Source of the DNA: Haliotis cracherodii
Lineage: Eukaryota
DNA: 64,000 nucleotides
Reading direction: 5' to 3'
Assembly: GCF_022045235.1 (NCBI RefSeq)
Contig: NW_027266265.1
Coordinates: 57,350,001 to 57,414,000, forward strand
Below the pieces are notes generated by a model, which did no database searches, had not been told where the DNA came from, and saw only the letters and a list, made by a program, of their open reading frames with translations. A program made the translations under genes and the position numbers. This document shows, piece by piece, positions 30,901 to 63,100 of the stretch (its first letter is position 1; each line of letters begins with the position of its first letter).

Positions 30901-33900
30901 CTAGTTCAGGTGTGGCCTTGACCTCACCCCCCCCCTCCTTCTTCTCACCCCCCTCCTCCTTCTTCTCACCCCCCTCCTTCTTCTTCTCACCCTCCGCTTC
31001 CTTCTCCTCGTCTGTGTTCGTGTGGTCAGTCAGTGGGTAGGGCACGATGGAGTAGCCACTGCAACAACAGCACACGTGCGCTAAGTGTATATAGAGAATC
31101 ATGCACGATGGAGTAGCCACTGCAACAACAGCACACGTGCACTAAGTGTATATAGAGAATCATGCACGATGGAGTAGCCACTGCAACAACAGCACACGTG
31201 CGCTAAGTGTATATAGAGAATCATGCACGATGGAGTAGCCACTGCAACAACAGCACACGTGCACTAAGTGTATATAGAGAATCATGCACGATGGAGTAGC
31301 CACTGCAACAACAGCACACGTGCGCTAAGTGTATATAGAGAATCATGCACGATGGAGTAGCCACTGCAACAACAGCACACGTGCGCTAAGTGTATATAGA
31401 GAATCATGCACGATGGAGTAGCCACTACAACAACAGCACACGTGCGCTAAGTGTATATAGAGAATCATGCACGATGGAGTAGCCACTACAACAACAGCAC
31501 ACGTGCGCTAAGTGTATATAGAGAATCATGCACGATGGAGTAGCCACTACAACAACAGCACACGTGCGCTAAGTGTATATAGAGAATCATGCACGATGGA
31601 GTAGCCACTGCAACAACAGCACACGTGCGCTAAGTGTATATAGAGAATCATGCACGATGGAGTAGCCACTACAACAACAGCACACGTGCGCTAAGTGTAT
31701 ATAGAGCATCATGTGCGTTAAGAAGAGCTGTTTCCAATGTGCATCGTCAATGACAAAACTAACAATCAGGTAAAGTGATACCACAGAGTCTTTTTTCTTA
31801 TCACAATATGCTACACGTGATTTCCAAACTTTACACGCTAACCCTGCATGAGACAAATGGTGCATCTCAAGCCATGGATCTATGACGTCACATGTGATGC
31901 GTTCATGAGTGTCGGTTCACAGTATGTCCGTTTGTGCTTCTAACCAGCCTAATATCTCTTGAATATGAGTAATATATCTGTAATATACAGATAGGAATTA
32001 GCTGGTCTTGCTTATACTTAATGTCTCTAGGTGGATATTCATATTTGCATACTGGACATTATGACAATATAGTCATACACAACTCCAGTTTCAACTGTGG
32101 ACTTACAAAGGTGTTTCAATAGGTTTCTCCTCCACCTGCTCTATCATGTCAAACAGTGCCGAGCCCTCCTTGGTGGGGTAGTACTTGAAGCCAGCTGATA
32201 CCAGCAGTTCTCTCCCTTGATCTGAAAACAATTCAAATTTAGAGAATTCCCACAATCTGTTTGTATTCTGCCATTACATTTAAGAGAAGATTCCTGGAAT
32301 TATTCCAATGACAGAAAAGACCTGCATTGTACAAGAATTATTACATTTGGGTAAAACATATCCTTTCCGGCTACCGAGGTTACAGAGTAACATCTTCCCC
32401 ATGCAGGTCAGGATTGCGAGCATCAAACCATATAGGACAGGAAGAAACACTTCACTGACAGAGGAGACTATGTATCCAGAAGGCAAATGTCAAACATGAG
32501 ATTAACACAATAACTGATCCTTTGTCGACAGTAATTGATGTATCATTTGGATCCTGTTGTCCTTCATAGAACATGTCATGTTTTAGCTTTCATGGGGGGT
32601 CAAATATTGACATAAAAACTGGAGTGATGTTAGTTGAAGACTTTGTGCTAGAGGGAGATAGCATGGTGACTGAGTGTCTGAGCCAGGAGTTGCTTGCCAC
32701 GGGTTCGAATCCCAGATTTGACACAATATCATCCTTGGTCTGTCAGCACCTCACCCAGTTGTAGGTTACAACAAATGACCTACATCACTTTGTTTCTGAA
32801 TCTTGGTCTCTCAGCACCACACCCAGTTGTAGGTTACAATAAATGACCTACATCACTTTGTTTCTGAATCTTGGTCTGTCAGCACCACACCCAGTTGTAG
32901 GTTACAATAAATGACCTACATTACTTTGTCTCTGAATCTAGGTCTGTCAGCACCTCACCCAGTTGAAGGTTACAATAAATGACCTACATCACTTTGTCTC
33001 TGAATCTTGGTCTGTCAGCACCACACCCAGTTGAAGGTTACAATAAATGACCTACATTACTTTCTGAATCTTGATCTTTCAGGACCACACCCACTTGTAG
33101 GTTACAATAAATGACCTTCATCAATTTGTTTCTGAATCTTGTTCTTTCAGCACCATGTCATCAGCTCATGGGTTTCTTGAAGTGACAATGTTCCAAGACC
33201 TGCATCACTTCGGATTTTCATCCCACATTAAACCTACACGCTGTGATATAACTGAAATGCTGTTCAACGCAGCGTTACACCCAACTCACTCACATGGCAT
33301 CAACGGTACTCACCTTGAATGACCTCACCCAGGTCATTGTGACATTCCACCTTGACCGAGAATGTCTGACCTTGAGTGAGTTCCAGTGATTCTGTGTCCA
33401 TGACGATTGCCATCTTTGTGGTCATCTCCACTGGGTAGCCGTTGACCCACTGACCTTCGTAGATGATGCCGGATGCATGTGTCATCTTGCCCTCACCATG
33501 GAACATGTCATTTAGCCACTGACCCTGCAACAGTAAATAGCCTTGGACATCATATGGCACAAAGGTTAGCTTCAGACATGTAGGTCAGGAATTAAGCATT
33601 AGACATATAGGTCAGTCTTAGACATGTAGGTCAGCCTTAGACATGAAGGTCAGCCTTAGACATATAGGTCAGCCTTAGACATATAGTCAGCATTAGACAT
33701 GTAGTCAACCTTATAAGATTGGCCTTAGACACAGAGGTCAGCCTTAGACATGTAGGTCAGCCTTAGACATGTAGTCAGACTTAGCGATATCCCTTTTAGT
33801 CATATAGGTCAGCCTTAGTTCATAGGTCAAAGGTATGCCTTACACGTATAGGTCAGCCTTAGACATGTAGTCACCCTTGTAATATTGGCCTTCGACATAT

Positions 33901-60100: not shown

Positions 60101-63100
60101 TTACAGCAGTGTGTCTGTATTGTGCAGGGTGTTACAGCAGTGTGTCTGTATTGTGCAGGGTGTTACAGCAGTATGTCTGTATTGTGCAGGGTGTTACAGC
60201 AGTGTGTCTGTATTGTGCAGGGTGTTACAGCAGTGTGTCTGTATTGTGCAGGGTGTTACAGCAGTGTGTCTGTATTGTGCAGGGTGTTACAGCAGTGTGT
60301 CTGTATTGTGCAGGGTGTTACAGCAGTGTGTCTGTATTGTGCAGGGTGTTACAGCAGTGTGTCTGTATTATGCAGGGTGTTACAGCAGTGTGTCTGTATT
60401 GTGCAGGGTGTTACAGCAGTGTGTCTGTTTTGTGCAGGTGTTACAGCAGTGTGTCTGTATTGTGCAGGGTGGTACAGCAGTGTGTCTGTATTGTGCAGGT
60501 GTTACAGCAGTGTGTCTGTATTGTGCAGGGTGTTACAGCAGTGTGTCTGTTTTGTGCAGGTGTTACAGCAGTGTGTCTGTTTTGTGCAGGTGTTACAGCA
60601 GTGTGTCTGTATTATGCAGGGTGGTACAGCAGTGTGTCTGTATTGTGCAGGTGTTACAGCAGTGTGTCTGTATTATGCAGGGTGTTACAGCAGTGTGTCT
60701 GTATTGTGCAGGGTGTTACAGCAGTGTGTCTGTTTTGTGCAGGGTGTTACAGCAGTGTGTCTGTATTGTGCAGGGTGTTACAGCAGTGTTAACTGTGTCT
60801 GTATTGTGCAGGGTATGGTAGCCAGGTGTTGACGCTGCAGGTGGACAGGCTGGAGAATCTCATAGACAAACTGGAGTCTAAGGTAATTCCTTGCTTTTAT
60901 CGTAACTCAAAAGAAAAATGTGCATGCAGTTACCATGGTTACCATTTGATAAATAATTGTAAAATGTTCTTTTCATTGATATTCTTATTGTGTTCCGAAT
61001 CATTTAACCTGCAATGCTAATTTTGTACAAATGGTGTATTGTTTGTGTTTTCAGGTGAACTTCGACAACTTTGTTGATGAGGAGGTTGTGTATGAGCCTG
61101 AGTGCCTGGTGCGTACAAGCTGAAGATCTTTTTTGTATAGGTCACATTTATTTAAAATCCACCTAAAATCATCATTGTGTAATTTTGTTTTGCTACAAAA
61201 TAGTGTATTAGGATAAAAAAATAATAGTCTTGTTTCTCAGGAACCACCCGCATGATCATAAAGTCTGCCGCATATTTTGTTTTAATTTCTATTTAAAAAA
61301 AAATATCAAAATCCTAATACTTAAACACAATGCACAAAAAAATGAAAATGGAAACAAAACGAAACGTGCAATGAACTTTATGATGATGTGGGCAGTGCAG
61401 ATGTTGATGCTACGATGATGCTACTTGTGTCTTCATCTAGTGTTTTTGCAGATGTTGATGCTACGATGATGCTACTTGTGTCTTCATCTAGTGTTTTTGC
61501 AGATGTTGATGCTACGATGATGGTACTTGTGTCTTCATCTAGTGTTTTTGCAGATGTTGATGCTATGATGATGCAACTTGTGTCTTCGTCTCGTGTTTTT
61601 GCAGATGTTGGAGCTGGGATGATGCAACTTGTGTCTACATCTCGTGTTGTTGCAGATGTTGGAGCTGGGATGATGCAACTTGTGTCTACATCTCGTGTTG
61701 TTGCAGATGTTGATGCTATGATGATGCAACTTGTGTCTAAATCTCGTGTTGTTGCAGATGTTGATGCTATGATGATGCAACTTGTGTCTAAATCTCGTGT
61801 TGTTGCAGATGTTGATGCTACGATGATGCAACTTGTGTCTAAATCTTGTGTTGTTGCAGATGTTGATGCTACGATGATGCTATTTGTGTCTACATCTTGT
61901 GTTTTTGCAGATGTTGATGCTACGATTATGCAACTTGTGTCTAAAACTTGTGTTGTTGCAGATGTTGATGCTACGATGATGCAACTTGTGTCTAAATCTT
62001 GTGTTGTTGCAGATGTTGATGCTACAGAGGAACTTTGAAGTAAAGGTGGAGGAGCTGGACAGTTTCAAGTCGAGTCTCAGGGCTTATGTGGAGTCTACCC
62101 AGGGTGTGGGTGGATGTCGCAAGTAAGATCATGTTGTTGATAATTGCGGCCTAAATTTATCCATGTATGTCTCTGAAATGCATTCGTTCATGATTCCGAA
62201 ATCAATACTATGTAAGATATATTATGATGCAAATTTCTTTTTATCATAAGTCAGCCTTCTTATTTAACATGTTTAAGATATGCAGGGATACGATATCTGG
62301 AAGAACAACTTCATTATTACATTTAGGAGCAACGTTTTGGTCTAGATTCTAACAATATATCAAACAAGTGGAGAATATACACAGAAACGTTGTTCCTAAA
62401 TGTACGAAGTTGTTCTTCCACATATCGTATCCCTACTGAGTAGTCCATCTTTTAAATGCCTCTCAAAGAAGTTATGTTTAAGGTCGATAATAGAGTCCTT
62501 GGTACTGCTACCATACCATGCTTTTCAAAGTCTGAAGTCTTCATGTTCATCTTGGAGCAGAGATTAATGAGATAGTGTTTTTAATTTCATGAGTAGGGCT
62601 ACTCATGTTAGTTAATGACACGGGCCAGGGTTGGCATGACCTATGTTTTGGTGATACGTTACTTTGGTGATTTCCTGTACCTCTGTGTGATAGCGCCTCT
62701 GTGTGATAGCATCTCAATGTTGTCTACTTTGCAACCAAATGAATCAGGTCGTCCGGCTCTGTAACTTGGTTGATCGTACCCTGATAACGTAGATTGTTGC
62801 TCACAATAATGATAACTGTATTGTTTGGTTGAGACTTGATTATTTACAGGATGTTATCATATAGCTGTAATATTGTTGAGTACAGAGTTAAACACAAACA
62901 TGCTCACAAAGATTGATGAGAGTACTAGGGTTTGATCATTATATAGTCTGGGATTTTGTGTTAAACTTAATAGATTTTCATTCAGCACTTCAGTACAGGC
63001 AGTGTTTTACTCTGAGTGGATCCAAACNNNNNNNNNNNNNNNNNNNNNNNNNNNNNNNNNNNNNNNNNNNNNNNNNNNNNNNNNNNNNNNNNNNNNNNNN

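Follow-up and report, generated by a model that had tools for sequence, protein, structure and literature searches.

The window considered here is a 64,000-nucleotide stretch of contig NW_027266265.1 of the abalone Haliotis cracherodii, and the elements at issue are tandem arrays that stand directly before exons 5, 8 and 10 of a NECAB1-like gene within it, each being a stack of copies of the 3' splice site of the very exon that it precedes. We consider it likely that these arrays are minisatellites of the 'mirage' type known from amphioxus, carried as tolerated by-products of a repeat-prone genome and not serving as regulatory devices. A fourth stack in the window (array 1, on the opposite strand and close to a MORN-repeat gene) has an anatomy like that of the three NECAB arrays (arrays 2, 3 and 4). 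The kind of repeat is a known one, met here in a new lineage and in a dense cluster, and the observation is real for three of the arrays and plausible for the fourth.

Arrays were called by Tandem Repeats Finder (TRF), and the four that an earlier note on this DNA had picked out are all present where it placed them. They run head to tail and are of minisatellite size, with periods of 61, 48, 31 and 51 bp for arrays 1 to 4 respectively, 10-39 copies apiece and 92-98% matches, and array 3 further contains 30-bp variants of its unit and a higher-order period of 154 bp. The starts of the NECAB exons behind the arrays were set by comparing each exon in turn with P0086, the RefSeq protein for isoform X2 of Haliotis cracherodii NECAB1-like, and not through a joined spliced model. 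P0086 shows 100% identity to every NECAB exon in the window, the NECAB proteins of H. rufescens, H. asinina and H. rubra having several residue differences from these exons, and so the DNA is that of black abalone or of a source that cannot be told from it. A 35-residue query taken from an EF-hand exon recovers homologues of NECAB type that carry both an ABM domain and a pair of EF hands. The introns before exons 5, 8 and 10 each end in a pyrimidine run followed by CAG (Yn-CAG), and with the exon starts fixed at 54444, 60812 and 62013 it is clear that the units of the three NECAB arrays take in the real boundary, splice signal and exon bases included. The exon numbers proposed at the outset fit, provided that an optional micro-exon is left uncounted. 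Similarly the claim that each unit lies across an intron/exon boundary and includes 2-17 exon nucleotides holds for the NECAB arrays, whose exons are fixed by P0086 and whose units contain 17, 3 and 13 exon nt, and is unsupported for the exon of array 1.

The units are locus-specific, having been copied from the adjoining junction and not drawn from a dispersed repeat. Searches of the 1.18-Gb genome with the Basic Local Alignment Search Tool (BLAST) found no other copy of the array 2 unit, returned only array 3 itself for the array 3 unit, and showed the units of arrays 1 and 4 to be likewise unique. The exon bases inside the NECAB units encode residues conserved across Haliotis and partly in distant animals (SYEGAD.., MLMLQR..), and so the exon came first and served as the source of the upstream copies. 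Copies match their own consensus at 92-100%, which points to copies that are young or have been homogenised, and the most divergent copy of array 3 (82%) is the one adjacent to the exon; this high likeness, the higher-order period of array 3 and its divergent edge copy are together the usual signs of unequal exchange. NECAB intron 4 is 776 nt long, and 744 nt of it belong to two arrays, array 2 and a 52-bp array just upstream. That the stacks might instead be artefacts of assembly, or a satellite borne by transposons and lying next to exons, is scarcely credible. Tandem repeats are indeed error-prone in assemblies and arrays 1 and 4 do have dispersed elements as neighbours, but those elements stop at the array edge, the units are confined to their own loci and hold the exon's own conserved coding bases, the copy variants are ordered and show the higher-order period, and the arrays, at 0.5-1.2 kb, are well within the length of long reads. 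A transposon-borne satellite or dispersed family was accordingly rejected on the genome BLAST results, the units not being found in mobile-element copies elsewhere.

A simple route to such a structure can be proposed. A segment of 30-61 bp lying across the intron/exon boundary, and comprising pyrimidine tract, AG and 3-17 exon bases, would be duplicated in tandem at its own locus, and would then be expanded and homogenised via slippage or unequal exchange, as for any minisatellite. The extra copies would be inserted upstream of the exon with the last copy still attached to the intact exon, and so the gene would go unharmed for as long as that copy is the one chosen. The last copy would be chosen through exon definition, since it alone has a full exon body and a nearby donor after it, and in array 3 there may be the second reason that the exon-attached copy alone has a consensus branch point. 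Occasional use of an upstream copy would yield a transcript with a premature stop, to be removed by nonsense-mediated decay (NMD). Choice of a site by its exon context agrees with established work on duplicated splice sites. The same construction is found at donors as well as acceptors of unrelated genes, these being two kinesin loci (L024 and L040) that were taken blind.

The annotated gene models speak to which AG is used. The readings K/Q|SYEGAD, E(G)|YGSQ and CL|MLML are common to all seven RefSeq isoforms, which come from H. cracherodii, H. rufescens, H. asinina and H. rubra, and in the annotated NECAB isoforms of these four species the exon-attached AG is the only one used, these being gene models, which do not report forms bound for NMD. 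Variation among the isoforms is confined to the micro-exon, which is either skipped or subject to a one-residue NAGNAG choice (RefSeq X1, X2 and X3). When each upstream acceptor copy is read in the frame set by the upstream exon, every upstream AG leads to a premature stop, as had been claimed, and this holds for 10 copies in array 1, 9 in array 2, 36 in array 3 and 13 in array 4. The stops come about in different ways. In array 2, whose 48-bp unit preserves the frame, reading ends at the TAG of the penultimate copy or at a TGA that some others carry; array 4 has an in-frame TGA in every unit; and array 3 is open in all three frames over its full length, being stopped only via a TAA in the last copy or through a shifted exon frame. 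These universal stops are weak evidence of design and can be had without a selective explanation, because one stop near the exon suffices and is likely by chance, a stretch of 48-61 nt being likelier than not to contain a stop in any one frame.

For at least 20 nt the decoys have the same sequence as the true site, and this identity, along with the stop behind each of them, would suit a splicing rheostat, in which the decoy stack diverts transcripts into NMD-degraded forms, array length sets the share so diverted and the output of the gene is thereby tuned. Minisatellite length is usually polymorphic, and that too can be counted in favour of such a device. We nevertheless regard the rheostat as very unlikely, in that the stops are explicable without selection, unrelated genes have the same arrays at their donors and acceptors, silence of the extra sites is reported in amphioxus and in human F7 (PMC3087553, PMC3902484, PMC1557585), and the branch-point motif of array 3, present only at the true site, argues for the avoidance of decoys. 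This motif is made by a 7-nt insert, TTAACTG, which occurs only in the exon-attached copy; no other YTNAY motif is present in the last 130 nt, the branch A of this one lies some 20 nt before the exon, and between the motif and the exon-attached AG there is no AG, and so the rule of the 'first AG after the branch point' is enough there. The same insert makes the TAA that stops the in-frame decoy products of this array.

Turning to how often junctions are stacked, the expectation from random seeding was taken as array density multiplied by unit length and by the number of junctions. For the 22 junctions of NECAB this gives 0.45 spanning arrays, and 3-4 are seen (P about 0.01-0.001), a comparison which is post hoc as the window was chosen for the feature. 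An unbiased sample was therefore drawn from exons of the same genome matched blind by the Pfam kinase and kinesin models, with their flanks, and its loci, 20 measuring 10 kb and 29 measuring 3.2 kb, yielded 49 acceptors and 39 donors inside the domain, 88 junctions in all. Clear junction arrays stand at 2 of the 88, one at a donor and one at an acceptor, where 0.5-1.0 are expected (P = 0.10-0.25, not significant). In the donor-side array (L024) the unit takes in the final 62 nt of a motor-domain exon and continues through GTAAGT and 15 nt of intron, and in the acceptor-side array (L040) it consists of a pyrimidine tract, CAG and 6-8 exon nt, this second array reaching the P-loop exon (GYNATVLAYGQTGSGKT). 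Four further arrays (L001, L014, L020 and L049) end 8-38 nt from a junction; as candidates for a junction origin they were set aside as unproven, since they resemble their own junction no more closely than shuffles do. By distance, 6 of the 35 nearby arrays lie across a junction or within 40 nt of one (1.9 expected, P = 0.011), and none of the 35 lies at 41-200 nt (3.8 expected, P = 0.019). Arrays thus crowd against exon edges. Enrichment of arrays over junctions had been put forward as a check in the earlier note, and in these 88 junctions the crowding to within 40 nt is in its favour while the excess of spanning arrays is not significant; seeding may be favoured across the junction itself, though the sample is too small to show it.

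These counts bear on whether a mutational process is directed at junctions, such that sequence at or near a splice junction is likelier to seed or to hold a minisatellite than is other intronic sequence, for which replication or repair trouble at pyrimidine tracts, the chromatin of exon edges, or transposon ends are possible causes. Such a process, which would add to and not replace the explanation given above, we hold to be conceivable though on the whole doubtful. The crowding within 40 nt and the empty interval beyond it speak for it, as do the three spanning arrays and one degenerate donor array among the NECAB junctions, and for two of the four arrays, 1 and 4, the distal boundary coincides exactly with the end of a dispersed element. 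An element resembling a miniature inverted-repeat transposable element (MITE) ends exactly where array 4 starts, at its intron-distal edge, another dispersed repeat abuts array 1, and the pre-expansion distance of each of these elements is only about 38-44 nt upstream of the acceptor. On the other side, arrays that are demonstrably junction-derived occur at just the two sampled junctions, not significantly more than expected, the motif likeness of L001 and L049 does not exceed that of shuffles, the NECAB count is post hoc, and the genome BLAST shows array 3 to be without a transposon at its edge. A fuller proposal, in which the birth of minisatellites is tied to junctions or to transposon ends no more than about 40 nt away, several per cent of junctions are stacked, and array length at some genes measurably shifts the balance of productive and NMD splicing, seems rather unlikely. 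Were the junction-tied birth and the NMD balance both true, abalone would be a natural system for studying how the spliceosome chooses among dozens of identical sites.

Several points weigh against the view that the arrays are tolerated by-products whose decoys are resolved by exon definition. The 3-4 junction arrays in one gene, taken with the crowding of arrays at exon edges, hint at something beyond random seeding, and the exon behind array 1 is unverified. In arrays 1, 2 and 4 a copy-by-copy and branch-point motif analysis brought out no local feature distinguishing the last acceptor, and exon definition as the discriminator is for these three arrays an assumption; the silence or low use of the decoys we infer from gene models alone. 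Amplified junctions with decoys resolved by exon definition, which was one of the readings offered earlier, nonetheless match the accepted view of mirage arrays, the locus-specific units and the annotated use of the last AG; a preference of the process for junctions may exist.

Array 1 and its surroundings have to be treated with more caution, and although the anatomy is like that of the NECAB arrays the exon behind it is putative and the case unproven. Its copies are at 98-100% identity, with TAG replacing CAG in 4 of the 10 upstream copies. The label 'MORN1 exon 8' had been attached to this exon and is unverified: an acceptor-like unit and an open frame are present, but no homologue supports the exon and the phase does not match that of the nearest MORN exon. 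A Pfam scan of the putative exon gave no domain match, and searching proteins with the frame of the neighbouring MORN exon gave no match either, a blank that says little as only proteins of 0.55-1.75 times the query length were searchable. The putative exon needs 2 nt from an upstream exon, and the nearest confirmed MORN-repeat exon (33525-33313, minus strand) ends ATTCAAG|gtgagt and leaves 1 nt of a codon, and so either an unseen exon lies between the two or the exon of array 1 is not part of the MORN gene. The MORN-repeat gene itself, recognised by Pfam MORN matches in five exon frames, is on the minus strand and head to head with NECAB.

Two further repeats lie in this part of the window. 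At the 3' end of the putative exon a 21-bp (7-codon) repeat is present four times (30923-31009, minus strand), and each unit contains GGTGAG, giving three in-phase donor-like sites and a fourth in another phase; this repeat may be a coding donor-side array. A complex 19-bp array of about 26 copies (33545-34079, minus strand) runs, with degenerate copies, to about 17 nt from the acceptor of the MORN exon at 33525-33313.

The window as a whole is rich in minisatellites, with 27 arrays of at least 3 copies occupying 24% of its bases, as compared with 10% coverage and a density of 0.13-0.15 arrays per kb in a 200-kb sample of genic DNA from elsewhere in the same genome. Beyond the donor of NECAB exon 3 is a 49-bp array, absent from the list in the earlier note, whose unit aligns locally as a degenerate copy of the last 27 or so nt of exon 3, with the GT lost (0 of 2000 shuffles reach the score), and it is an old and decayed donor-side junction array. 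For the 52-bp array that follows exon 4, local alignment against shuffles gave no significant likeness to its own junction. Its unit at 53760-53811 resembles instead the donor junction of exon 3 (51213-51232; CACTGG|GTACAGTAACTTG), a score reached by 6 of 2000 shuffles, and, since this was one of several comparisons, the resemblance may be due to chance. The coordinates of these features, together with the exon map of NECAB and the two kinesin arrays, are collected in the table.

Table. Arrays, exons and neighbouring elements in the window, and the two junction arrays of the blind sample (positions are those of the window unless a locus is given)
Feature	Position	Strand	Description
Array 1	31042-31713	-	61 bp x 11.0; 98% matches; minus-strand unit = ...tgctgttgttgcag + 17 nt
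Putative exon behind array 1	30925-31058	-	open 44-codon frame rich in E, K and G; may continue to about 30845
Array 2	53965-54460	+	48 bp x 10.3; 92% matches; unit = pyrimidine tract + CAG + first 17 nt of NECAB exon 5
Array 3	59604-60789, tail to 60814	+	31 bp x 38.5; 96% matches; unit = pyrimidine tract + CAG + GGT (first 3 bases of exon 8)
Insert TTAACTG	60789-60795	+	7 nt; only in the exon-attached copy of array 3
Array 4	61396-62025	+	51 bp x 12.4; 94% matches; unit = pyrimidine tract + CAG + first 13 nt of NECAB exon 10
NECAB1-like gene	48121-63400	+	12 exons in the window; last coding part beyond the window; exon-by-exon match to P0086
NECAB exons 1-4	48121-48168, 50533-50557, 51111-51219, 53544-53667	+	match to P0086
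NECAB exon 5	54444-54580	+	exon-attached AG at 54442-54443; 100% to P0086 residues 103-147; both ends in phase 0
NECAB exons	55700-55758, 56366-56422	+	match to P0086
NECAB optional micro-exon	57601-57618	+	18 nt; codes VENIVE; CAGCAG tandem acceptor at 57595-57600
NECAB exon 8	60812-60882	+	100% to P0086 residues 194-216; codes (G) and 23 residues
NECAB exon	61055-61108	+	match to P0086
NECAB exon 10	62013-62122	+	ends GGCR; start of ABM domain; 100% to P0086 residues 235-270
NECAB last exon in window	63323-63400	+	match to P0086
49-bp array	51247-52353	+	22.9 copies; starts 27 nt past the donor of NECAB exon 3 (51111-51219)
52-bp array	53708-53955	+	4.8 copies; starts 40 nt past the donor of NECAB exon 4 (53544-53667)
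Dispersed MITE-like element	61200-61399	.	about 190 bp; more than 40 loci at 88-91% identity; self matches on both strands (inverted)
Start of dispersed repeat	31699-31800	.	over 40 loci, 83-88% identity; adjoins array 1 at its intron-distal end
Kinesin donor-side array (L024)	G000:C12:51664340-51667657, oriented 1728-3318		83-bp unit; at least 19 copies; runs off the end of the locus
Kinesin acceptor-side array (L040)	G000:C78:60637126-60640341, oriented 1-1535		29-bp unit; at least 49 copies

Among the sampled kinesin loci one, L021 (G000:C74:2986-6933), is of another sort. C74 has a G+C content of 16.7% here, and the locus holds a full kinesin motor in a frame of 776 codons which stays open only when TAA and TAG count as sense, there being 20 such codons in the domain and no in-frame TGA; a kinase match on C74 (24214-24885) has the same pattern. 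C74 has the look of DNA from a ciliate-like organism, one using genetic code 6, that is present in the abalone assembly.

Minisatellites that span junctions are already known from lancelets and from a few human genes, and so the biology is not new; the suggestion that this was not a described system was wrong (PMC3087553, PMC3902484, PMC1557585). What is added is a second and distant animal lineage in which they are common, at about 2% of blind-sampled junctions and with 3-4 in one gene, the papers searched having yielded no description of such arrays in molluscs. With up to 38 identical sites to choose from, the arrays are clean natural tests of how an acceptor is selected, and in array 3 the only visible discriminator is the 7-nt insert that makes a branch point. 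They are also a warning for annotation, in that gene finders have to ignore many splice sites of perfect appearance, and they are a source of intron lengthening and, on a published model, of new exons or introns.

Of the known systems with which the arrays can be compared, tandem NAGNAG acceptors share with them the neighbouring alternative AGs at one acceptor, and a true case is found in the NECAB micro-exon, where X1 and X2 differ by one residue. NAGNAG sites are however 3 nt apart, in frame and both used, whereas the abalone copies are 30-61 nt apart and use of an upstream one would truncate the protein. Intron gain on the Rogers model, by duplication of an AGGT-containing segment (PMC3087553, PMC4974935, PMC3265369), is similar in that extra splice sites arise, the duplicate is spliced out and the mRNA is unchanged. 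It differs in that single duplications inside exons give a new intron there, while in abalone the intron is already there and grows longer as its own end is copied many times over.

A closer parallel is the 37-bp variable number tandem repeat (VNTR) in intron 7 of human F7, the first unit of which spans the exon 7 donor, and where mutagenesis showed that the identical downstream donor copies are functional but silent (PMC1557585). Here as there, identical splice sites are stacked; in F7 the exon-attached copy is used and the others are silent though functional, and in abalone the exon-attached copy is the one used in the annotated isoforms. In contrast to the F7 repeat, which is donor-side and for which scanning in the 5' to 3' direction is the explanation, the abalone arrays named here are on the acceptor side, and of their sites it is the one reached last by transcription that is chosen. 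As the chosen site is last and not first, the F7 scanning rule is not directly transferable.

The closest likeness is to the mirage minisatellites of amphioxus, which have been described in the globin genes BflGb6/9 (PMC3087553), in Adh3 (Canestro et al. 2002, as cited in PMC3087553) and in the PGBD5 and troponin C genes (PMC3902484). Such arrays stand at 5' and at 3' boundaries, and splicing is regular despite the AG and GT signals in the repeats; their haplotypes differ in length, and edge copies escape homogenisation (PMC3087553). The host in the present case is a gastropod mollusc and not a cephalochordate, and the abalone arrays are longer (10-39 copies, and at least 49 in L040) and denser (3-4 in one gene), their splicing being taken from annotation only, whereas in amphioxus, where either the 5' or the 3' boundary may be repeated in units of 10 to about 160 bp, regular splicing is reported to be unaffected. 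In the rest the two agree, each consisting of locus-specific tandem copies of an exon/intron boundary that carry the splice signal and some exon bases, and each showing concerted evolution with divergent copies at the edge.

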